This document shows positions 233 to 35,757 of a DNA stretch of 64,000 nucleotides, in pieces. Origin of the DNA: Botryllus schlosseri (taxonomy: Eukaryota). Made by a program: the position numbers and the translations under genes. The notes beneath the pieces were generated by a model. The model did no database searches and was not told where the DNA came from. It saw only the letters and a program-made list of their open reading frames with translations. Positions within the stretch are counted from its first letter, which is position 1, and each line of letters starts with the position of its first letter. The stretch covers positions 28,086,001 to 28,150,000 of the forward strand of contig CM119374.1 of assembly GCA_051294905.1 (NCBI GenBank). Direction: 5' to 3'.

Positions 233-3200
233 CTATTTCAAGTTATGTATCATCTCTTCCTTGGATATGAGATGCGTTGTCTTGTTAACCAGCGACATGA
301 GCTGGTTGACGTTGTGCGACCATTCCGTGAGCACGTCGCTCGGGTCTTTCGGCCGGCAGAATGTGATCACGCCGTCGAGACGGTCAATTTTCGCGTACAC
401 TGTCTTGTTCACAACCAGCTTCGAGAGGTAGTCTTCTGCTTCCTGGAAATTTGAAGAAAATCTTGGAGGTACAGAACATCAATGTACAATTGTATAATAT
501 ATTCATATTGAAATAAATCCGCATCTTTTAGGCTGACACTCGTCAGGGGAAACCATCAGCAATTAGTTGATATTTCAAAAGAACATATGCCTTGAGCTCA
601 AAATTAGTTGGCGAGTCCTGGAAAGATTTCTGATGTTTCGTAGCAAGCTACAAAATTTCGAAATGATATCGATGCCCATACAAATAATGACGATGCAACT
701 CAAGAATCATTAGCGGCATCATTACATAAAAAGAACTCACGACATAGGACAGGGTGCAAACGACTTCAAAAGATGAAAAGCACACCGTACCTGGATGCTC
801 AGGTCCAAGAGCTCACTCATTCTTTTGGTGGTGATCCTGGTGTAGTATTTCGCCATGATTCTGATGTTCTGTGTAGGAAAAGTAGGAAGTAGATACAGTA
901 CAACCAGACCTGTACAAACTACTCATTGAGTTAGTTGACAGTTAACTAACTAATATGTTTTTTGAATAGTTCTAGTTGCGGATTTTGAAATGTGAGTAGT
1001 TCTAGTTCTGGTCGCGCTCCAGTTTTCAAAGTAGGCCCGTAAGTCTTATCTAGCCTACAGCAAACCGAGAATACACAAAACTCACATGTTCCACAACCCG
1101 GTTCGCAAAATCCTTCCACCTGGCGTTTCCCTCGTCCGTGGACGGAAAGACGTCTGTGCAGGGGCTGTCCGGGGTTCCGTGCCGCAATTCTTGCATGTAA
1201 ATCTCCTTCACCTTTTGCAGCTGCATTACTTCCTGACTCACGAAAGACTGAAGCAGAGACCTGTCGACCGAAGCATTGTCAGAGGCAGGTAGAAGTCAAG
1301 TAGAAGTAGAAGAAGGGTTCTATTCAAGTACAGTACAAGTAGATATTTCGGAAAATAAGTAAATAGTAATTATACCAGGCCCAGTTTTGCTTGAAAAATT
1401 GGAACTCGTCTTCAAGTACAGATTCAACTAACAAGTTTCACAATTACAATTGAATAGCATATTGATATTGAAATAAACTCGAATATTTTCGGCTGGTCAG
1501 GGGTAATCGTCAGCGACTAGCAGAGAATTGAAAAGAACATTGCATATCAACAATCGTATCACGGAATTTGGTGACGACAATTTCAATATGGATGTATTGT
1601 GCAATTGTATATTAAAGTTCTGTAACTCCAAGAAGGTCTTGAAATAGTAAATAGCTGGTTAGTTGTCTAAAAGACTGTTCAGATCAAAATGTTGGAACTG
1701 CACAAAAACACTCACTTGTATAGCGGCATGTCCTCCAGTTTTTTTTCTTGGCGTATTCTCTCAAGAGTATCGGACTGTTCATTATCGTACGGGGCCAGAA
1801 TCACGTAAAGCACAACGCTTTTCAACGCCTGTTGCCATTTCGTGACGTCACTCTGTATCATTGGCGTGTCGAAAACCGCTTTGAAATGTTTGCAGGTGGA
1901 AAGGTACGAATTCTCAGACAGGTCGAGTTCGATCATCATTTGATAATAACGCAATTTCAATTTCTGCAAAATGAAAACAATCGGAAAATTAACATTGTGA
2001 ATGATTTTTTGAATCGTTTTCTTCTTCCACTATTTGGACATAGATCTTTCGTTTGAACCGGGTTCCAAGCTCCAAAGTAGCATGAACTTCTAGTGAAGTG
2101 GACATATGAACTTGAATTTTACAGGCAAATTGAAAACAAAACTGACTCGTGTCCAAATTATATGTTCAAAGTCAAAATTTCCCAAAACGGGACATAACAC
2201 AGTTTGGTTTTACAGCGGCGAATTATGAATGCGAGCCACTCTATAGGCTTATCACTGGAGCAGAGTTGAACAAAAAAGTGGGTTGAACTATTAAACTTAA
2301 AACTGAACAGCGACTTGCGGCTCAGACTGGAGTCAAAACACTATGACTCGGACTCGACCCTCTATTAGCGGACTTGGACTCGGTCTCAACTCGGTGATGA
2401 ATTGAAAATGACTCGACTTGACTCGAGTCAAAACTAGAAAGTGAGATTGACTCGTGACTCGGTAACAACATACCTGAATCTCCTCGTCTTCGGAAACGAA
2501 AAATTTAATGCTAATCTTCTTGCTGATAATCTGACAGCGGATGTAGTCCTTCTTGGCGAGACACAGCCGCATCTGTTCCAGGATAAATTCCACTTTTTCC
2601 TTACGCTCCATGCTGCCGAACGTCTCCACCTGGAAGATATTTATTCAAATAGTAAACAAGCCAAGCACGAGTAGTGGGCTTGCTGGAAAAAGATTAGCTG
2701 TGCTGATAACGGAGATATTAAACTCAGAGCACGAGTAGATAATTGCCATAGGTGGTTATTATAAAAGTACTGCTACTTTTCAAATACTACTTGCAGTGCG
2801 TAACCTACTCAAGTCATTGCATTTATTGCAAAACTATATATTTTTCAGACTTTGGGTTCTGTTAAGTAGTAATTAGTTTTTAGAAGTTTCCATCGAAATT
2901 GTCATAGCAACTGTTTGAAATAGCCTCCCCCCCAGTAATGATGGTAACCGAATTTATATTTTGAAAATTGTATAACTTTTAATGCTATAGTAATATTGCA
3001 TTAGTCAAGAATTTTAAAAAGTAGCCACTTCTGGTGGAGTACTGAAAGTATACGTCTCTACCAAATCTCATTGTAGAAACTACTCGAGTACTTTTCTAAA
3101 CTTTTATTTTCTAACACCTCTTGAAGTAGTTTTGATCCATTTTTACCGCTAATGTCCAATTGTGCATTCGACATTAGACACGGCAAGTTTTTTTTATTGA

Positions 3201-6027
3201 AATCTGGGACATGTCATCCTAAACTAATTGAAGCGAGGTCCTCACAATCACAGCATAATTCCATCTACTAAGTCAGTGTTTTTGTGTCCTAGGCCAGAAA
3301 GCTTTCACTCGCCTGAAGTTCCTGCAAGATGGACGCGGCCTCCGAAACCTCGCCCTGGTCCTCTTTGATCTTTGCAAGAATCATTGTTAGTCTTGCCCGC
3401 TCGATTTCCACGTAGATCTGAAAATTACATCGATAAACACAGATTGAGAGCAGATATTTTTAGAGAGCAAGTTTCAAAATGTATGCTGCCTGTAGGAAGC
3501 AAGCAACTTTCAAGTGGTACGTTATTATTACTTTAAGAGCTTTTTCGGGGTACAGAACTTCAAGATACAATTGAATGCAATATCCATATTGCAATGAACC
3601 TCAATATTTTCGGCTGACACTCGGCAGGGGTAATCATCAGCAACTAGTAGAGGATTAGAAAGAACATTGTATATCAGATCAACAATCGCATCACTAAATA
3701 CGACGTCACCAGCATGCAATTTGAATAATCAAGGCTGACAGATGGCTGAAGCTTTATATTTACAAAATGCACAAACTCTTTCTGTTGGCGGATTTTGATA
3801 AAAGTCAATTCCAAGGTCCACGAATGAAAGAATATGTTGTCTTGAACTATTTTGGCACAATTTTTGACTGCTTCAAGTAATTTCAACAGGTCATATACCT
3901 TGCCTTCCGTTACTATTCTGAGAGTGTCGATAAGCTTGAGTTTGGTATCCATGTCGGGAGTCTGATCCACATATTTATAGCATTCCTGTACCATTTTTGC
4001 AACAGCCTGTAACAAAAACAAACAACAGGGTTTGACAGAGAAAATATGCAGCTTTTCCAAATTAGAATAGAATTGAATTACCAAATTGGAAAAACTTGGA
4101 TAGTCAACTGAATTCCCAATTAAAAAGAAATTTAACAAAAATCATGTATGGTTCATACCAACTCATAGTTCATTCTTATCAGCATGAAAATGCAAAATGT
4201 ATTTACATCAAGTTAGGCTTGTTTTGCACTATACAGCTCTCCTGTAGTATTTTCAGGAAGAGCAGAAATTAGATAACCATTAAAATAAGACCATGGAAAC
4301 ATTTCGCGAATTAGCTCGGCCTTATACTCTAATTAGTGTAATTTAACAACTGGAATTATCTAGTTGTGTAAGTTTGATTACAGCAGAGCGTCCGAAATGT
4401 GAGAGTATCCCTATACCCCGAGACATGTACACATTACAGTAAGGTCACAATCTCTTGTGACAGACTGACCTGTTTCAACTGGCTGCGTTTCTTTGTGATC
4501 ACCACAATATTGTCATTGAGCATGTCCCATTCTTTGGCTTCAAAACAAAGCTTCACGATCGCGACCAGAAGTTTGCCCGTTGAAATCATATCTCCGGCCT
4601 GAAAGAGGAAAGATCATTTATTATGAATTGTTTTCCATGCAGTAGACCTTTGTGATCAGATTTTATATTGGTTTGAAATGGATCAGAAGTGGGAAATGAT
4701 CCCAAAGTTTCAGCAAAGTTGATTTTGACAGTAAAATGTGGGGTAGACCACAAAATAACCAAAGTTATCGCTATATACACTTGCCAGATCGAATTTAGAC
4801 TTCAATAAATGTCACTTACCAGTCTGGTCTGCTTCTCAAGACTCATTAGCTGTTGAACGGCATCATTCAGCTTGCCATCCTGTGATTAATAAGAAGAATG
4901 TAGGGTGAATTTGAACAATGATCTGCGGTACAGAGCCTAAATAAGACGACGCAACAAATTTTGTTGTTTTTCTCAATTCTCTGCTAGTTACCTTCATCGG
5001 ATTTATTTCAATATGAATATATTATTGAATTGTACATTGCAGTTTTGTACCGTCTAGAATCTTGAAACACCATTTTGTGTGGCTCTCTACCGTTATATTC
5101 AGGCATGAGGTAACAAATAGCAATGTTTTTATAAGTTTTGTTACATTCTATTTTCTGAATAGTATATTCAATTCATATTGAAATAAACTCGAATATTTGC
5201 GGCTGACACTTGTCAATAGTAATCGACAGCAAGTAGTTGACAATTTGAAAGAACGTTGTATATCAACAATCGTATCAACAAATATAATATATACAATGTT
5301 GCCGGCAATATTTTATTTTAAAAATTTACATACTGACATAAAATTTGATAATCAGAGTCACAAAAAATTCTCCAGGCTTCAAATATAATTGCAATGGGGT
5401 TTTTGTAAAGTGTATTCGTAATATAGAACATCGATGACAGAATATTAACTTTCCCTGGACTCCAGAAATTAACGGGATGATTCCAATCATGACTTGACTC
5501 ATAAACGAATGACTTGACCTCTATGTCTGCGAAATCACCTGTGACCTAGAGACAACTTTTTGAGTCAATTTCCAAGTCATCACGTTTTCATCATTACGAT
5601 GTACATGCAATGTCAAGACAAGGCTGGCACAGTCTATGGCCCATACGCATATGCCTCTTAATGCGCACATCAAATCAAACGACACAAAATGTAAATATTT
5701 TATGACTTGAAATTGACTCGAATCTGAAATATTTTAGATGACTCGTCTCGAGTCAATTTGAAAATATGCCGTATTCAAGTCAAATGTTGTGATGTTTTAG
5801 ATGTTGTGGGTCGGTATATCATTTGACAGAGGTTTGAAGTACATTGAGTAACCGTGGGTGTAGATTAGATCATGACAGAAAATGAACATGCAATAAAATA
5901 AAAAATCAAGTTAAATACCGGTATATAATAGCCTTACCAAAGCAGTTTGCTGACATTCCGGAATGATTCTGTCAACGGTTTCTGTATAGTCCACCTCCAT
6001 TTTCTCTAATTTCCCTTCGATAGTCAT
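233..6027 (-). CDS. PSMD12: 26S proteasome non-ATPase regulatory subunit 12 (RPN5), 10 coding exons, 452 aa
   Basis: Exons on minus strand: 6027-5938, 4879-4820, 4598-4470, 4006-3899, 3417-3313, 2629-2474, 1963-1716, 1260-1086, 868-791, 442-233. They join in frame to [19 protein letters not shown]...LEKQTR...[15 protein letters not shown]...[24 protein letters not shown]...[24 protein letters not shown]...[19 protein letters not shown]...[19 protein letters not shown], which matches PSMD12/Rpn5. All introns are GT-AG except intron 5 (GC-AG). Confidence 0.97.
3535..3715 (+). repeat. Representative copy of a high-copy unclassified repeat of about 190 bp (family A)
   Basis: Core ATTGAAATAAACTCGAATATTTTCGGCTGACACTCGTCAGGGGTAATCGTCAGCAACTAGTAGAGAATTGGAAAGAAC seen at about 450, 1445, 3535, 5155, 21790, 21960, 28085, 33550, 36040, 40325, 41425, 46170 and 61730, on both strands. 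Confidence 0.8.
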
Positions 6028-6489
6028 AATTTTTGTTCTTTTCTGCGGTCCAGTATTACATCCAGAATAGAAACCAACTACGAGATACGATTCCGCTCAT
6101 GGACAATATTGAAAACACAGACCCGGAAATCTGCACACTCAGCATTAAAACCATGACGACGCAGAATATCTGGTCCTTCTTTTCCATCTGGTGATCGTAT
6201 CGAATGCAAATAAAAAAGTAAAAGATGCGATTCCATAACATTCAAAGTAACCGATTAGTTGAAAAGTGGTTTGAAAAAATTAAGATTTCAACAATTATAT
6301 GTTAGCAACTGACGAAACCTTCCCATCGCACTTGCGATGCACAGGACAAAATCCCCTCAGAAATACCAGTCCCGTAGCTACTTTGTATGCTATGCTTGTC
6401 GGAAAATATATAACTTGACATCGAGTACATATATTGTTACGTCATCATTGTCATAAATTTGTGACATGTCATTCATGCCATCAACGTCC

Positions 6490-6900
6490 GGTTTAGTTCT
6501 GTTCAATTTCATCAGATCAATACACCACAAGATTGTGATACAATGAAAAGTAAGGAGGCTGTTGAAACGACTTGGAGTAGTCTTTGAACGTCATGAATTC
6601 TTCATGGAATCCTGCCTATGCCTCAGATAAATAAATCGAGGACAAAAATATGCAGTAACACACATATATTATTATGTCCGTGCTTCATTCTTTTTCCTTT
6701 TGAGGAGTCGTTGCATAACAATCACTGTAACTTGTAATGATCATCGTATTCATTCTCTTTTGTTTGCCTCATTAGCTTGGTCTTGACATCGCCTGTCTGA
6801 TTTCAAAGACTACTCCAAGTCGTTTCGACATCTTCCTATCTTTTCATTGCATCGCAATTTTTGTGGTGTATTGAACTGATAAATTGCTATTAAACCGAAC
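6490..6900. repeat. Inverted pair of a repeat (family G) just upstream of PSMD12
   Basis: CAATACACCACAAGA..GCGATACAATGAAAAG..GAAACGACTTGGAGTAGTCTTTGAA forward at about 6520-6590 and inverted at about 6800-6880; single copies at about 19020, 27720, 39655 and 48790. Confidence 0.72.
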
Positions 6901-7478
6901 CGAAATAGTATAGATAACCATCATCCGGTTTATTTGTAGGTTGGTTATCTTTTTATATAGCTCAGTGGTTATCTATAGTTTTAGTTATTTTGATTTGTGC
7001 CACAGTTGGCGACAACACCATAGCGTTTATAAGACTTATAAAGGCTATGAAAACACTACTACCATAGCAATTTACAACGTAGCTAGGGGTTGGTATACCA
7101 TTTCTGAGTTGAAAACACAAGAACGCGGCGCATCTCTGTTCATTTAGCGCAAGAGAGGCAGAAATGGTAGATATGGTGCTGACTTTAATTTTGCAACTGC
7201 TATAGTGCAGGCAATGACAGGTTTATACAAGATTCCGTCCCAACTGCAAGCATAACAAGAATGGTTTTAGCCTTTTAGGGATGCTGACTAAACATTGGTC
7301 GCGGAAATATTTTAATAGAATGTTTTGTAGGCCTATGTGCTGAGTGACGTAGTGAAGATTAGTTATGGTAGTAGGAAGGTACTGTTGCATTCACCCTAAC
7401 CGCTAACCCTAGGGTACCGTATCCTAACATTACGGGCTCACCCTAACCCTAATATTACGGTACCCTACCCACCTTCAA

Positions 7479-21579: not shown

Positions 21580-24500
21580 ATGCCTGCTCAAGCGCGACTG
21601 GGCGATAACCCGGTCGTCGAAACAAAATGCGGGAAACTGCGAGGATTTGTCAGCAGGATCGAAGATGATTCGGCAAAACCTGTGTATAATTTCCTGAACG
21701 TTCCCTTTGGAAAACCTCCCACGGGCAACAGGCGTTTTCTGCCACCAGAAAGGTACGTACGCGCGAATACATTTGCCAGCAGCTGCAATTGAATGGTATA
21801 TTCACATTGAAATAAACTCGAATATTTCCGGCTGACACTCATCAGGGGTGTATCAACAGTCGTATCACCAAATATGACGTCACCGGCTTGAAAGTTGGTG
21901 TAATCGAATACGTCATTCTGTAATTTATTCTTTTACTGTTCTTTTAAATTCTGTCCTATTGCTGACGATTATCCATGTGTACGAGTGTCAGCCGAAGATA
22001 TTCGGGTATATTTCACTGGGATATCTACCCCTGACATTTCAATATCAATATTTATATGAAGTTCTGTAGCCTACATCCAAGAGTCTTCGAATATTGTTTA
22101 GAATCGACGCGTGGGATGGAGTCAGAGACGCGACAAGAAACATGCTTCACCCGATTCAGGACGCTGCTGTGGCGAAGCGTTTCGATGACGTCCTCCCGAT
22201 GAAGTTTTTCATGGGCTGCTCCTATGAGAATCAGGACGAAGACTGCTTAAACTTGAACCTATTCACTCCGTCGATAGAGAAGACGTCAAAATTACCAGTA
22301 AGTGTTGTCGTACAATGTACATGTAGAATTGTACAACTAGAAAAGTTTCAGCTTTTCCAAATTAGATTAGTATTTGAATTATTGAATTCGAAAAAAATTG
22401 GAAATTGAATCCAATTCCGAATCATAAAGAATAAAGCTCAGTTCATATCAAATCAGATTTCATTGTCATAATCATGAGAATAGAGAATGCCTGCACACCA
22501 AGCTTGGCTCGTTTCGCACATTTCACAAATTAGATTACCGGCGTTTCACTCTGATTAGTCTAATTGGACGACTGAAATTATCTATGATTGTCCAAGATGC
22601 ATATGTGATATTTTCGTAACAATCTCATAAACTCGCAGGTACTGCTATGGATTGTTGGCGGAGGCTTTATGCGCGGCAGCGCGTGCGCGTTCGACGGCGG
22701 GCCTTTATGTGGGCTCAATGACGTCATAGTGGTGTCGCCCAACTACAGAGTGAATGCGTTCGGATTTTTATCGCTTGGGAAAGGAACAAAATGTCCGGGC
22801 AACAACGGTGTTTTAGATGTGATACTTGCTCTCAAGTAAGTATTCGTGAGGGGATGGTCAAAGTATTCAGCGATTCTATCTGCGTATAAGTATAAGTGCT
22901 GCTTTACATTTATGCATTCATATGGGCACAATGATTCGAGTAAGCCCATCCTAATAGAATATTAATTGTTAATAACAATTTGTTATGTTTCGAGTCGAGT
23001 TTTTTCGAGAATTGAAACTATACGTCCCCTTTCACTAAGAGTTATATTCAACTGGAATTATAGTTTCGATACATTTTCACGAGGAAGATTTGAGACCTCG
23101 ATTAGTCGTAAAACAACATCCAAAATATGTAATACAAAGCTATATAGTGTCCATCCTCCTCTCCTATCTGTTCATGACATCGCATTGTGTCTTATCGCAT
23201 TGTATATTGTGTGTGACTTGTTCAGATGAAAAATATAACCCAACGATATTATTATTATTATAGTTTATTAATCCATTTGGAAATAGCGTTTGCCAATAAT
23301 TTTTCAGATGGGTTCAAGATAACATATCAGATTTCGGCGGAGATCCAGACAACGTTACAATATTTGGCGAAAGTGCGGGTGGGGTGATGGTTGAGCTGCT
23401 TATGATGTCTCCGCTGGCCGAGGGTTTGTTTCACAAGGGAATAGCCTTAAGCGGTAGCATACTTGCTACAGGTGAGTGCCTGGTTGGCTGTACCTACGTT
23501 TGGAAAATGCTATGAACTCTAGCTTGTACCTTGTGAGGTTGTGAAATCTAATTACGTAGACAATGTATTTGATGTATGAATATAAAGACACCTTGCCATT
23601 GCTATTAGATTATAGTTTCTCAAGCTGGGGGTAAGTTTCCTTTCATTTTGGGGCAACTGAAAACAATGGAAAACTTAACAAAAACAATCTGAAAGCAGTT
23701 AGGATTAGAAATACTGAATCAGGAATTCAGAATTCGAAAGAAATGCAACAAAAACAAGTTCAGTTCATACCAAACCGAAGTTCACACCAAGCTTGGCACG
23801 TTTCGGACTATATAGGTCTCTTGTTCTGTAGCTTTTTCAGGAAAACCGGAAATCGGAATAGAATCAAAATTAGAGCATAGAAACATTTCACAAATTAGAT
23901 TAGAATAGGAATTAAAGCAAATAAGCATTTCACAAAGTAATTTAAATTGGATTCCTTGCATTTTGCTTCAATTAGACAACTAGAATTGTCTAGCTGTCTC
24001 AGTCTGGCAATGTTGTATGATCCACAGCTACAACGACAATAGGTTGCGGTTTTTCTAAGCTTCTCTTCGCCATCTGACAGGGTTGTAACCAAGTCACAAG
24101 GCTTCGAGTCACAAGTCAATCTCACTTTTATATTTTTGACTCGAGTCAAGTCGAGTCATTTTCAATTCCCACCGAGTCAAGTCCGAGTCCAAGTCAGCGA
24201 ACAGAGGATCGAGTCCGAGTCATGGTATTATGACTCGAGTCCGAGTCCAAGTCATTGTGTTGACTGCTCAGTTTCCAGTTAAAGTATTCCTAAACCCACT
24301 TTTTTAACTCTGTTTGGTGATATTGAATGGTTCGCATTTATAATATATCAATTTTCCTCACTTTTAGCAGTTTCTGGTCGCATTTTCAAGCACCAGTACC
24401 AACAAACGAAATCCCAATAGTGTTATGGCTTCCAAATTACACTGAAATGTCGGTCTTGGCCGTCTGAATCTCGAGTCAATGACTTGCTTCGAGTCATGCG

Positions 24501-28200: not shown

Positions 28201-31200
28201 CTCTTGATCAATGATAATAATCCCCATGTACATTATGCACTTGTGGAAAATAGGTGTATTTACGGAATTTCCACCGAAGCTTATAGGTTTTAGGGTTACC
28301 ATATCTTGGAATACGGGAAGGAGGAGACTTTTTACAAATCATAAAAAGTATGATTGCCGGACTAGAAAACTGCTGAATTCTCAAATCTGCTGGAAACCGT
28401 TGTGATGACTAAAAAAGGTCATCATTCCGGCACGACTCCCGAATTACCCACATTTTCTCGATACTGGTATGGTAGGGGGTAGGGTTACCATATATTGGAA
28501 TCGGAAAGGAGGGCCCTTTGACCATATCATAGAAGTTACTTGATCAAAACTGAAATCAGTCGATTTCGCGCTAAAAAATGGTCATCACTTTCGTTCGGCT
28601 CCCGATTTACACACTTTTTACTTGAAATTAGTGGTGTTGACTAAAAAAAAGGTCGTCACTTCCGATCGAACCGCGAATTTCCTATTTGGCTTCATATATG
28701 CCCATTTTCGCTCGAATCTATTCATTATCTTAGCTGTAGAAGCTGTAAAGGAGGACGAATTGCTAAAAATGAGGACATTTAGGCGTCCTCAGAGGACATT
28801 TTCTATTTCCTGAAAAAGGAGATCAAATTCTCCCAAAGGAGGGCATATGCTAAACCTATTATAGGTGCTGTAAACGAAAGGCATGTATTTTGCCGATTTT
28901 AACCCTAGCGCAGGTTGTAAATCAGGCCGTAGGCACTTTCTGTAACCAAATTCTGTTTTTACACCCGTTCCAAAGGGAGTCAAAAACAATCCATATGGAG
29001 ATCTCCATGGCAATTGGTATATAGTCGACTCCGCTTAATTCAGACACCGGATAACCCGGGCAACCGTTTTATTCGGCCAAAATGCTCGGAAACGGAACAG
29101 AAGTAAAATTGCATGCAAAAAACTCCGATTTATTCGGACAATTCGACGCATGATTCGGCACTTCGTTTGTTTCGACACAAATTGAGTGATTATGACAAAA
29201 CAAAGTCGGTCCATCCATAAAAAATCGACATTGAATTCATAAGACCGTGTCAGCATTATAGTCGCTTTTACTACTTTACAGTTGAGTCCGTCTTGTAGAA
29301 CAGAATGGTACAGAAAGGTTTTCTGCAGTAGCTAAAAGCTTTTTTGTTTTTAATTTTCTACTGTTTTGTGGAGTACTTTCATCAGGTGAAAATAGTCTTT
29401 CAGCCATAAAGAATTACTGTACTATCATAGCCCTATATGTGTGTTTTACACAGTAATATTGTGATTGTGAATGGTATGGAATTCGGCCCACCGATTCATT
29501 ATAAAATGTCCTATTCGGTTGCTCAAAGACTTCAATTCTAATGCCAGGTATGCAGATACCCACTTATTTCTACGTGTTGGCGAAGCGCCTCCAGTACAAC
29601 CACTCGACCACCAACGGCCCGGGCATCAAAAACAAGGCAGACTACGTCAATTGCGATCACGGCGACACCTGTCATTACGTTTGGGGTGTGCCGTTCGTGA
29701 AAGCGGATTTGCCGGGAGGCGCCTGGTTCACGAAGGAAGAAACGGAATGTAGCCGCGTTGTCATGAAGTATTTAACCAACTTCGCAAAATCGGGGTGAGC
29801 TTATGTGGTGTGCTTTTTTCAGAGTTGGTCAAAGTACTTGGCGTTGATGCTTAAAGGGGCACTGCACTCTAAATATGATGTGGTATCCAATTAATCGGGA
29901 AAAATATTTTTGCTGCAGCCGTTTTCTTCAGAAATCCACCGTAAAGGAACTGCAGCTAAACGAAAATTCCAAATATCCCCATTCCAGACCAGTTGAATAC
30001 ACGCATTTCTATGTGGCGCGGTTGCGAGTCTTCGCTGCTTTACCAGTTGCGAAAGTGCTGACGTGATATATTCAGTTGCACTTGCACGATCCAGTATCTC
30101 GACGCGACTCTCATATTCTATAGTCCAGGGGTTCTCAACTTCTCTTGTATAATGGGCCGCATTTTAGCAGCAAAAGATGCTGCGGGCCGCAGAAAATTAT
30201 TACCATGTATTTGTGGCCTACTATTAAATTTAGGCTACTGTAGTCTATTTTGCAGTCGTAGGGGCATTTAGTACATTTTTATGCATTTAAAGCAATATTG
30301 GACAGCGTTCGAAAGTTTGCAGTTGCTGTTTTTTAATATAAATCTTCCAGCAGCGCAAGTAAATCCCTTCATGGGGCGTTCATTGCATTCGTTGCCATGC
30401 ACCGTCAAACCCTTTCACCAAATAACCAAACTCCCCACGTTTTCCCTGACAGTATTTACTTTGAAAATATGTCTGCTCTGTAAAGGTGTACAATATGTCG
30501 CGGGGTTCTCTCGAACCGGAGTCCACCCGAATTCCGATTCAAAACAATAACAATCTAACAGGGCTGTAATGACTCGAGTCACGATTTTCTGATGACTCGA
30601 CTTGAGTCAAATCATTTTCTCAAAATACGGAAATGACACGATTTGCACTCGATTCATTGCACATGACTCAAACCAAGCCATATGATTCGAGTCTCAGACG
30701 ACCAAGACCGACATTTCATTGCAATTTTGAAGAATAGTAAAGTTACCACTCTTTTGGGATTTTGTCTATGGTACTAACACTTGAAAAGGCGACCAGAAAC
30801 TGCTAAAAGTGAGGAGAATTGGTATATTATAAATGCGAACCATACGATATCACCAAACAAAGTTATAAAAAGAGGGGTCAACAAGACTTCAACTGGAAAC
30901 GGAGCCTTCAGCACAATGACTTGGACTCGGAGTCGAGTCATAATACCATATGACTCGGACATGAATCGGTGGTAAATTGAAAATCACTCGACTTGACTCG
31001 AGTCAATACTAAAAAAGTGGGATTGACTTGACTCGGAGCCTTGTGACTGGGTTACAACCCTGCAATCTAAAATCGACCATATATCAAGAAACCAGAACAC
31101 ATCAAAGAATGAGTAATCAAACGACACAGAGGCCTCGCGACAAGAGAGCAAATAAGTAGCTAAATTAATATGTAACAACACAGGTGTCAGTAGTAATTGC

Positions 31201-33462
31201 TTTCACAGTGAAAGATGTCGCGGGTTGAGAGCCCCTGTTCTAGTCATATCATTTCTTTGTACGTAGACATGACCAATGTTCCCACTACGCTGCGCGAGCG
31301 CCGCCGCGCACTGCTGACATAGGCTGCCTGCAAAGAAAAATTAGTGCCGCGCACAAAATAAATTATCACTGTATCTTTCGCAGAAGGCACTGATCTGATC
31401 AGTTCAAACTGACGACCATTTCCGATATATAAATGTAGAGAATGTAGTAAAATGCGATGAAAAACTCGACTCACATTGTCCTCTGTTTTGGACCTCAAAA
31501 TGTTACGCACTGTTGTCCAAGGGACCGAGCATTGAGTTGGTGAGTGCACGCAGACTCGTGAAAAATTAGAGGGGCCATTGGACATTAGGGTGGAGTGAAA
31601 ATGACTTTTTTTTTCAAATCAAAAAAAGGGCTTCCTCAATCCTGACAAATGACCTAAAACTTCAATAAAAGTGACTTCAGGGTATTACCCCCATTTTCCA
31701 GCCGGCAACCCCCCAATTTCTGCGCATGGGGGGGTAAAATGGCCCATCTCGGCAACCGCTGGTCGTAGAGTCATGATATATAGCTCAAAATCTGCGGAAG
31801 CATCATGTTTCTATTTGTCTTAAGAAGAAAGTTTTCTCTATTGTGAACACAAAATGAGTTATAGCCAAAAAACAATATATACGCACATTTTTGTTGAAAT
31901 TCAGCATTTATTCTGACGAATTGTGATCTGTCATCGGTTTTTTTTTAATCTAAAAGTAACACACTGACAATACCGAATATTGGGCCCATAATACAAATAT
32001 ATTCACAACACAGTCCTTATAAAATCGGCTCAAAGCATCATAATGAAACACTCACATTTAACGACTTATTCAAAATGCATTTTTGCGTCAAATTTTTTCA
32101 TCAGTTTACGAGACTTATTTTTTGGGCAATCGAGAGGCCATCTCGTCTTTTAAATCCCGAAACTTGTGCTGATGCTTCTGTTACGAGCTTTACATGTCGT
32201 TCCACTGTTTGATTGTGGCATGGATGAAACAAAATCAGAGGCTTCTCGCGGCATTCTTCCAACAAAATTCACTTATGGACATTGAGAGTCATAGCAGTTC
32301 CAACCAATTGAACTGCGGTCCTATTCGTTTATTCTGTGTCCCAAAGTTGAATTTGGAAGCAAAGGCATACCACGAGTTGGTTGATATTGAACCTTATCAA
32401 CAACTTCCTCCAGCGATTGAGCACTTGACTGATGCAGAGTTGGAAGAATGCCGCGAGAAGCCTCTGATTTTGTTTCATCCATGCCACAATCAAACAGTGG
32501 AACAGTGGAACAGTGTAAAGCTCGTAACAGAAGCATCAGCACAAGTTTCGGGATTTCAAAGACGAGATGGCCTCATTCGCCAAAAAATTAAGTCTCGTAA
32601 ACTGATGAAAAAACTTGACACAAGAATGCATTTTCAATAAGTCGTTAAATGTGAGTGTTTCATTATGATGTTTTGAACCGATTTTAAAAGGACTGTGTTG
32701 TGAATATATTTGTATTATGGGCCCAATATTCGGTATTGTCAGTGTGTTACTTTTAGATTAAAAAAAAACTGATGACAGATCACAATTCGTCAGAACAAAT
32801 GCTGAATTTCAACAAAAATGTGCGTATATATTGTTTTTTGGCTATAACTCATTTTGTGTTCACAATAGAGAAAACTTTCTTCTTAAGACAGATAGAATCA
32901 TGATGCTTCCGCAGATTTTGAGCTATATATCATGACTCTACGACCAGCGGTTGCCGAGATGGGCCATTTTACCCCCCCACGCGCAGAAATTGGGGGGTTG
33001 CCGGCTAGAAAATGGGGGCAATACCCTGAAGTCACTTTTTATTGAAGTTTTAGGTCATTTGTCAGGATTGAGGAAGCCCTTTTTTCGATTTGAAAAAAAA
33101 GTCATTTTCACTCCACCCTATTGGACATGACCATTGACCAAGAGATGTAGTAAGACAGGCGCCATCTAGCGTATACAAATATGGCTCTTAATAATTAATA
33201 ATTGAACCTCGTTACTTCAATAGCAAGACGGACTGCTGTGAACATTTCTTAGTAGACGCATAGCCAACCGATTCACTATTGTTACAGAGATCCCAATAAA
33301 GGAGTCGACATTCCAACACCGTGGCCTCACTACGAACCGCAAACGAGGAAGAATATAGTTCTGGATGAAACAGTCACCGTAGCGGAAAACTACGGAATGC
33401 AAGGAGTCAAACTACACACGGTAGACATCCCGCAAATGATGAAGACATTATCAAATAGCTAG
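21580..33462 (+). CDS. Type-B carboxylesterase (carboxyl/cholinesterase family), 9 exons, 558 aa, no signal peptide
   Basis: Exons 21580-21752, 22102-22297, 22639-22835, 23308-23471, 24698-24840, 26945-27169, 27301-27457, 29548-29794, 33288-33462, all GT-AG, total 1677 nt. Motifs: [63 protein letters not shown] (catalytic Ser), GVCDCEG (Glu), CDHGD (His), NFAKSGDPN...WPHY. Confidence 0.93.
24078..24661 (+). mobile_element. hAT MITE, CAGGGTTGTAA termini, GACTCGAGTC-rich
   Basis: TIR CAGGGTTGTAA/TTACAACCCTG; perfect TSD CCATCTGA. Family fragments also at about 2310-2460, 5480-5770, 19900-21240, 34265-34770, 44120-44540, 47430-47520 and 62960-63060. Confidence 0.88.
25180..25456 (-). mobile_element. 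tRNA-derived SINE with (CT)n tail
   Basis: Minus strand: A-box TAGTGTAATGG, B-box GGTTCGATCCC, then CCAAAGACTCGAAAAATGGTA...CCTGCTAGGCGCTCAGC, ending in a (TC)n run (GA repeat at about 25180-25205 on the plus strand). Confidence 0.75.
25617..26185. mobile_element. hAT MITE, TAGGGCAAGTT termini
   Basis: TAGGGCAAGTT...AACTTGCCCTA; TSD GTTATGAC/GTTATTAC; many TGCAACTTT sub-repeats. Confidence 0.82.
28291..28858. mobile_element. TAGGGTTACCAT-family MITE with a duplicated left end
   Basis: Two TAGGGTTACCATAT starts (28291 and 28480) and one decayed right end (ATGCTAAACCTA); TTATAGGT lies near both outer boundaries (28281-28288, 28859-28866). Confidence 0.6.
30126..31237. mobile_element. CAGGGGTTCTCAAC (Buster/Charlie-like) MITE containing a nested GACTC MITE
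   Basis: CAGGGGTTCTCAAC...GTTGAGAGCCCCTG; TSD CTATAGTC/TTCTAGTC (6 of 8 match, central TA). Confidence 0.68.
30559..31062 (-). mobile_element. GACTCGAGTC-rich hAT MITE, opposite orientation to 24078-24661
   Basis: CAGGGCTGTAA...TTACAACCCTG; perfect TSD CAATCTAA. Confidence 0.88.
31274..31580. mobile_element. CAATGTTCCC-family MITE
   Basis: CAATGTTCCCACTA...TTAGAGGGGCCATTG; TSD GACATGAC (31266-31273, with the right copy displaced to 33124-33131 by a later insertion). Related copy at 37636-37819. Confidence 0.75.
31586..33120. mobile_element. Palindromic (foldback) hAT-derived element made of two transposase 3' ends
   Basis: TAGGGTGG...CCACCCTA termini; perfect TSD TTGGACAT; inverted arms 31586-32263 and 32439-33120 (about 680 bp each) around a 175-bp spacer. 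Confidence 0.92.
32280..32640 (+). pseudogene. C-terminal fragment of a DNA transposase (hATm-like family)
   Basis: [21 protein letters not shown]...PCHNQTVE(RH)[31 protein letters not shown] resembles the [18 protein letters not shown]...RDGxIR tail of a widespread invertebrate transposase family. The first part of the listed ORF (32194-32263) is only the inverted arm read on the antisense strand. Confidence 0.75.
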
Positions 33463-35520: not shown

Positions 35521-35757
35521 TTGGTTCTTATATCTTATCAAGAAGCGCATGATGAAAATTGCTATATAGACAACATTGTCAGAATGAAGCAATACAGTGT
35601 GTCACCAGCAGTGTACGGACAACTTCAGTCTTGCCAGCCAACGACTGCTGCTGTTAAACGTTCTTTCTCCATTCTTGGCAAGCTACTTAATACGGACAGG
35701 CACTTTCTACCCGATAATGTTGGAGAGTATCTTTCGTTGTACTACAACAAATTTTAA
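35521..35757 (+). pseudogene. hAT transposase C-terminal (dimerisation-region) remnant
   Basis: CQPTTAAVKRSFSILGKLLNTDRHFLPDNV matches the hAT P(T/S)SxxxERxFS motif (E changed to K); no upstream ORF seen. Confidence 0.6.

Follow-up and report, generated by a model that had tools for sequence, protein, structure and literature searches.

Positions 31586–33120 of a 64,000-nucleotide stretch of the Botryllus schlosseri genome (the window, whose coordinates are used below; assembly GCA_051294905.1, contig CM119374.1, positions 28,086,001 to 28,150,000) hold a 1535-bp inverted-repeat transposon inside an intron of a carboxylesterase-family gene. We consider it very probable that this is a dead, non-autonomous hAT element: a foldback formed on one occasion from two 3' ends of a transposase gene, later shortened by a deletion at CAAC and now decaying neutrally in a spliced intron. 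It is an ordinary decaying non-autonomous copy, with an architecture that is unusual but explicable.

Structure and origin of the foldback

The element begins with TAGGGTGG at 31586, ends with CCACCCTA at 33120 and is bracketed by a perfect 8-bp target site duplication (TSD), TTGGACAT, at 31578–31585 and 33121–33128, recognized in the sequence, the arm alignment and the TSD survey. Its left arm (31586–32263, 678 bp, minus strand) is a transposon 3' end, and its right arm (32439–33120, 682 bp, plus strand) is an inverted copy of the left. In a gapped alignment of the left arm with the reverse-complemented right arm, 656 of 686 columns are identical (95.6%), with a few small indels. Between the arms lies a 175-bp spacer (32264–32438) that is coding on one strand alone and extends the right-arm frame, whose translation closes with ...MHFQ*. 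On the plus strand, right arm and spacer together encode the final ~125 transposase codons and the stop (32260–32640), collinear with the open reading frame (ORF) of a 3.2-kb parent type (L051:5233–7146). On the minus strand the left arm encodes the final ~54 codons (32101–32263); VER, with the putative catalytic E (E713, invariant in the homologue alignment), is intact there and the frame is broken farther on. The outer ~307 bp of either arm (31586–31892 and 32814–33120) are the terminal inverted repeat (TIR) of the parent type, element positions 1–307 aligning with parent positions 1–307 and 3212–2899.

These alignments and translations bear out the first-pass annotation of this DNA, which had described inverted ~680-bp arms, a spacer coding on one strand, a perfect 8-bp TSD and an origin of the arms from two 3' ends of one transposase gene. 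It had also seen that the arms differ at the core motif TVERHVKLV through a small duplication in the right arm. This is slippage of an 8-bp unit, AACAGTGG x2.9, at 32493–32515 on the plus strand (Tandem Repeats Finder), which alters the motif and is specific to this copy, a genome search finding no second occurrence anywhere. A perfectly matching inner arm stretch of 65 bp was considered as gene conversion; such a run has a ~5% chance at 4.4% divergence (0.956^65), and nothing was concluded from it.

When the whole element was searched against its own 495-Mb genome, the sole full-length match was the window element itself. Dozens of other matches stop at query position ~676–678 and occur as inverted pairs ~2.3 kb apart. 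The window copy aligns with the element at locus L002 at 10–684 (98.4% identity, left arm) and 1481–2332 (97.4%), and lacks 796 bp of it, from the inner part of the left arm across the whole centre and 40 bp into the right arm. CAAC stands at both breakpoints and a single CAAC is left in the window copy (32260–32263), the only copy with this junction: a 101-bp probe across it gave a full match nowhere else in the genome. On these sequence comparisons, the 796-bp loss is a microhomology deletion joined at CAAC. This in turn explains why the spacer is one-sided, since it is a 175-bp inner piece of the long right arm typical of the family, and its left-arm partner was removed by the deletion. The window copy is thus, as read from its sequence, a one-off, internally deleted version of a 2.3-kb foldback whose arms measure ~0.9 kb, and not the foldback in original form for which it had first been taken; further genome copies with the same spacer junction, which the annotation had proposed to count, were not found with the 101-bp probe. 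The annotation had itself named an ordinary internal deletion among the cases that would overturn it. This nearly applies, but the 2.3-kb progenitor is itself non-autonomous. Two other derivatives, one with two full long arms just 17 bp apart (C2:20839411–20841141, ~1.73 kb) and one of 1862 bp with TSD ATAATCAA (L013:494–2355), indicate that internal deletions of the foldback are recurrent.

Family copies are ~2.31–2.34 kb long and have inverted arms of ~900 bp around a unique centre of ~537 bp. Compared with the parent, they begin with its 3'-terminal ~1.43 kb, after which the last ~0.9 kb of that same end is repeated in inverted orientation. The founding junction, ...CAATTGG/GTGTGACC... with a 2-bp overlap, is common to at least 31 separate sites in the set of loci retrieved, overlapping loci having been taken out by hand from their coordinates. 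In an arm tree of 15 copies, left arms and right arms mostly fall into a clade each, and for left and right arm alike the sister of the window copy is L002; the tree was used in place of arm-specific diagnostic columns, 5 of which were found at a 75% threshold. The shared founding junction and the arm clades together establish a single origin for the double-3'-end architecture, which then spread as a unit. Moreover, 14 copies of the 2.3-kb type carry differing perfect 8-bp TSDs, and hence the foldback transposed; perfect 8-bp TSDs were found in the window copy and 16 other copies. For the centre, at least ~100 copies reach an amino-acid identity of ≥77%. Substitutions between copies show no third-position excess, and the coding remnants therefore drift neutrally. 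The proposal that a right-end/right-end derivative is mobile holds for the architecture, with its 14 TSDs and at least 31 places; it does not extend to the 1.5-kb window form, a single copy with no sign of movement after the deletion.

The copy at L054:4113–8875 (C12:16.37 Mb; TSD GTGGTTAG) was considered as an intermediate between parent and foldback and rejected, being a foldback copy with ~2.5 kb of unrelated sequence nested in its right arm. The centre of L002 (~1215–1226) and of most 2.3-kb copies holds a 12-mer with at most 2 mismatches to the terminal CACTCCACCCTA, followed by AAGTTAGC. This internal 12-mer may have arisen by chance, ~0.16 matches being expected per element by estimate.

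The parent type was reached from the centre peptide, which matches copies with long open frames. It is represented at L051 (4723–7934) by a 3212-bp element with TSD ATGGATAA and 307-bp TIRs that are 92.7% alike. Its ORF of 638 aa (5233–7146) is preceded by ~110 further codons in a different frame. L053 is a second copy of the 3.2-kb type, and at least ~7 high-identity copies have the N-terminal half, none of them with a complete frame. The first-pass annotation had contrasted the foldback with hAT elements that use distinct left and right ends. This contrast does not apply, as the parent's ends are inverted copies over 307 bp. Because they are equivalent over that length, the stretch at which transposase binding is expected, an element with two right ends retains all the terminal left-end sequence, and what it lacks relative to the parent's left end is the unique 5' subterminal ~480 bp alone. 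Mobility of the two-3'-end architecture is therefore real, and less surprising than it would be for a hAT element with short TIRs.

The following history accounts for these data. The 2.3-kb foldback arose once from a 3.2-kb element that had 307-bp TIRs and a single transposase gene of ~750 aa, and its two parts were joined at the 2-bp microhomology, presumably through a strand switch in repair or replication. With a full TIR at both ends, the foldback could be cut and pasted as a unit by transposase supplied in trans, presumably from the 3.2-kb type, and it spread to dozens of sites, producing at each an 8-bp TSD at an nTnnnnAn-like target. The intron copy, or its immediate progenitor, would then have lost 796 bp, founding junction included, through the CAAC microhomology, leaving the 680-bp arms and the one-sided 175-bp spacer in a copy that now decays neutrally in the intron.

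Superfamily placement and a second foldback family

The first-pass annotation had proposed an HMM search of the peptide. In Pfam, no transposase domain was found in the arm peptides, the 2.3-kb centre ORF, the 638-aa parent ORF or 24 homologues, each piece of a broken ORF being taken by itself. These homologues are ~750 aa long, come from other assemblies and are mostly insect, the closest named ones being insect 'uncharacterized protein' entries. It is a fold search that links the protein to hAT. The transposase C-terminus aligns structurally with that of Hermes, and the model has a predicted DDE RNase-H-like domain with an all-alpha insertion domain, as in Hermes. Invariant in the homologue alignment are D304, D378, C407-x2-H410 and E713; in the model's secondary structure, D304, D378, E713 and the CxxH would occupy the places expected of the hAT DDE and CxxH residues. 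A search of an ESM Atlas gave one unnamed arthropod cluster at 0.84 and was uninformative, and a profile search of PDB sequences returned chance coiled-coil matches such as TRIM25 and nothing real.

The DNA features point the same way. TSDs have T at position 2 in 16 of 17 cases and A at position 7 in 15 of 17, and so match the hAT target preference; nTnnnnAn is reportedly the consensus given by Arensburger et al. in 2011 for Ac/hobo-type hAT elements. The termini TAGGGTGG and CCACCCTA conform to the hAT form (C/T)A(G/A)NG. Hence the hAT-type identity proposed from the sequence is upheld by the 8-bp TSD, the target preference, the termini and the fold. The hATm group is defined by TAGGGTG/CACCCTA termini and 8–9-bp TSDs, two of its members having 417- and 575-bp TIRs (PMC6004678). 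The termini that the first-pass annotation had named as hATm-type match this published definition (PMC6004678), and an 8-bp TSD with a 307-bp parent TIR agrees with its TSD of 8 or 9 bp and TIRs of hundreds of base pairs. The element therefore appears to belong to the hAT superfamily and, by termini, TSD and long TIRs (the protein clade forming no part of the basis), to be of hATm type.

A second hATm-like family, with ~38% amino-acid identity to the first, forms foldbacks of ~3.2 kb in which a 194-bp loop separates arms of ~1.49 kb. These elements consist of two 5' ends: from TAGGGTGG onwards, either arm takes in the ~430 N-terminal codons and extends as far as a CLLHGNELPL motif. Copies lie at L055:1542–4709 (C9:12.90 Mb), L056:1870–5037 (C8:16.67 Mb), L057:2036–4764 (C1:35.00 Mb) and L058:~1925–5090 (C11:13.60 Mb); three of the four have perfect 8-bp TSDs (ATGAACAG, CCCCGCAT and CTGACTAT), and there are ~10 inverted pairs among the matches listed. 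The existence of this two-5'-end family suggests that foldback formation is recurrent in the genome.

Host intron, RNA reads and alternative explanations

The host gene was searched exon by exon. Pfam COesterase exons lie on the plus strand at 22636–22842, 23306–23590, ~26.9 kb and 29505–29793, the last covering COesterase positions 404–472 and ending at a splice donor. The intron that holds the element (29794–33286, 3493 bp, GT..AG) precedes the last recognisable coding exon, and 166 bp separate the element's end from the acceptor. The next exon (33287–33459, plus strand) is open to a stop at ~33460 and had no Pfam match when searched alone. The splice joint from 29793 to 33287 is covered by 24 reads of same-species RNA-seq run X17 and by 2 each of runs X13 and X18. 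Together, the spliced reads and the COesterase exons confirm the annotated placement in a carboxylesterase-family intron. The intron is spliced normally, with no visible effect of the element; the window copy is harmless there, and nothing about it points to a host function.

In run X17, all reads differ from the assembly at five host-exon positions (29561 C>G, 29585 G>A, 29639 A>G, 29699 G>A and 33348 G>A), which are most simply strain polymorphisms, not editing. The same intron holds a second repeat at 30559–31062, with short inverted repeats at 30566–30581 and 30994–31009 as well as a direct repeat. RNA reads accumulate on it with many loose ends and 'opposite strands' joints; the loose ends are varied, and the reads therefore come from many loci of what looks like a miniature inverted-repeat transposable element. 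Downstream of the host gene, an ORF fragment at 35521–35757 (plus strand) has a weak PF05699 match (E 0.015, below the cut-off) and is, from its sequence, probably a remnant of a different, canonical hAT element.

The hairpin architecture invites a broader and improbable reading, in which hATm-type elements repeatedly become mobile foldbacks whose hairpin copies, several of them in transcribed introns, have as double-stranded RNA (dsRNA) silenced the autonomous copies. If true, this would be a self-made, multi-copy animal analogue of maize Mu killer. Narrower, and less likely still, is the conjecture that the window copy itself is transcribed in the host pre-mRNA as ~680 bp of dsRNA, feeding small interfering (siRNA) or PIWI-interacting (piRNA) RNAs against its family in the manner of Mu killer and undergoing ADAR editing. 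The copy does resemble Mu killer in being an inverted duplication over transposase sequence in a transcribed position. Its predicted hairpin is near-perfect (minimum free energy −1155 kcal/mol for 1499 nt), the host intron is transcribed and spliced, the known 3.2-kb copies all look inactive, and in plants inverted transposon duplications that yield dsRNA or siRNA are known from Mu killer, Ac composite insertions and Tam3 NSt.

RNA reads speak against such a role. Across four RNA-seq runs, host expression is low and read depth over the outer arms is ~0–3. The few reads on the element concentrate on its coding part (32205–32765), and nearly all continue into unlike sequence. They carry fixed differences, such as 32342 C>T (39 of 39 reads) and 32352 T>C (35 of 35 reads), and therefore derive from paralogous copies. 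None of the element reads can be assigned to the window copy, which may nonetheless be expressed. The ADAR editing that had been proposed for the arms finds no support in these reads, which have no A>G or T>C excess and show changes spread evenly over the classes (in X13, A>G 6, T>C 7, C>T 11 and G>A 7). In addition, the arms decay neutrally, and the same hairpin is available from dozens of other copies, so that the window copy is not singled out. In run X13, 19 reads match from 32311 rightwards, and upstream of that point they agree with one another (consensus agreement 0.87) and not with the element. This points to transcription at another genomic place, either of a family copy or as a chimeric transcript, with a breakpoint at 32311.

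Several points weigh against the account of a decaying hAT foldback. The copy census is a lower bound, part of the candidates having been scored. The hAT dimerisation domain PF05699 was found neither in the parent ORF (E≤10) nor in the 24 homologues (E≤0.1), and the hATm placement draws on DNA features and not on the transposase clade. The deletion junction at 32263/32264, unique in the genome, is known from the assembly, and the deletion may have preceded or followed this insertion. We nevertheless regard membership of another superfamily with foldback-like long TIRs and 7–8-bp TSDs, of the P/Galileo type, as very improbable in view of the Hermes-like fold and the hAT-type termini and targets. 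Least credible of all is an assembly artefact, either a long-read foldback chimera or a collapsed palindrome: although the junction is found once and in the assembly alone, it is an ordinary 4-bp microhomology, a perfect TSD surrounds the entire unit, the same architecture recurs at no fewer than 31 other places each with its own TSD, and the arms are 4.4% apart and each nearest to the matching L002 arm, which is not expected of a chimeric read.

Comparison with known systems

The window element is best annotated as an intronic insertion of a non-autonomous, hATm-like hAT transposon. Like hATm elements (Zhang et al. 2018, Mob DNA 9:19, PMC6004678), the family has 5'-TAGGGTG...CACCCTA-3' termini, an 8-bp TSD and long TIRs, and its relatives occur in insects. 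The published TIRs are 417 and 575 bp long, against 307 bp in the 3.2-kb parent here, and hATm-6 is reported to carry PF05699, against no match in the present transposase and its 24 homologues (PMC6004678). A further difference is that the arms of the present derivative measure 0.9 kb and cover 138 codons.

Galileo, of the P superfamily, has long TIRs that take in the 3' end of its ORF, by >500 bp in some copies, and recruitment of an ORF 3' end into TIRs was deemed unique to Galileo by the authors of that study (Goncalves et al. 2014, PMC4168063). The two systems share an ORF 3' end within long TIRs and deletions that create structural heterogeneity. They differ in that the present family has a hAT fold, TAGGG termini and 8-bp nTnnnnAn targets, and in that its foldback form lost the gene's entire 5' half and was amplified non-autonomously from one founding junction. 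In the present family, very long TIRs have taken up the transposase 3' end within the hAT superfamily as well, and the product was amplified to dozens of copies. The family also implies that a hAT-type transposase can mobilise an element with two identical 'right' ends in vivo, which is unsurprising given the 307-bp parent TIRs.

Inverted duplications give rise to silencing RNA at Mu killer in maize, through hairpin RNA and siRNA (PMC3440606), and give dsRNA and siRNA in Ac composite insertions (10.1101/2020.01.07.897926) and Tam3 NSt (10.1101/2024.06.24.600476). The foldbacks resemble these loci in having an inverted duplication over transposase coding sequence and TIRs, with transcription from a flanking gene possible. 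The plant cases are single loci at which genetic silencing and small RNAs were detected, whereas here we describe a multi-copy, mobile animal family known from sequence. Foldback (FB) elements of Drosophila have arms built of tandem subrepeats. With FB the present family shares long inverted arms and little sequence between them; unlike those of FB, its arms simply duplicate the 3' end of a transposon, and in them Tandem Repeats Finder detects one 23-bp slippage as the sole tandem array.
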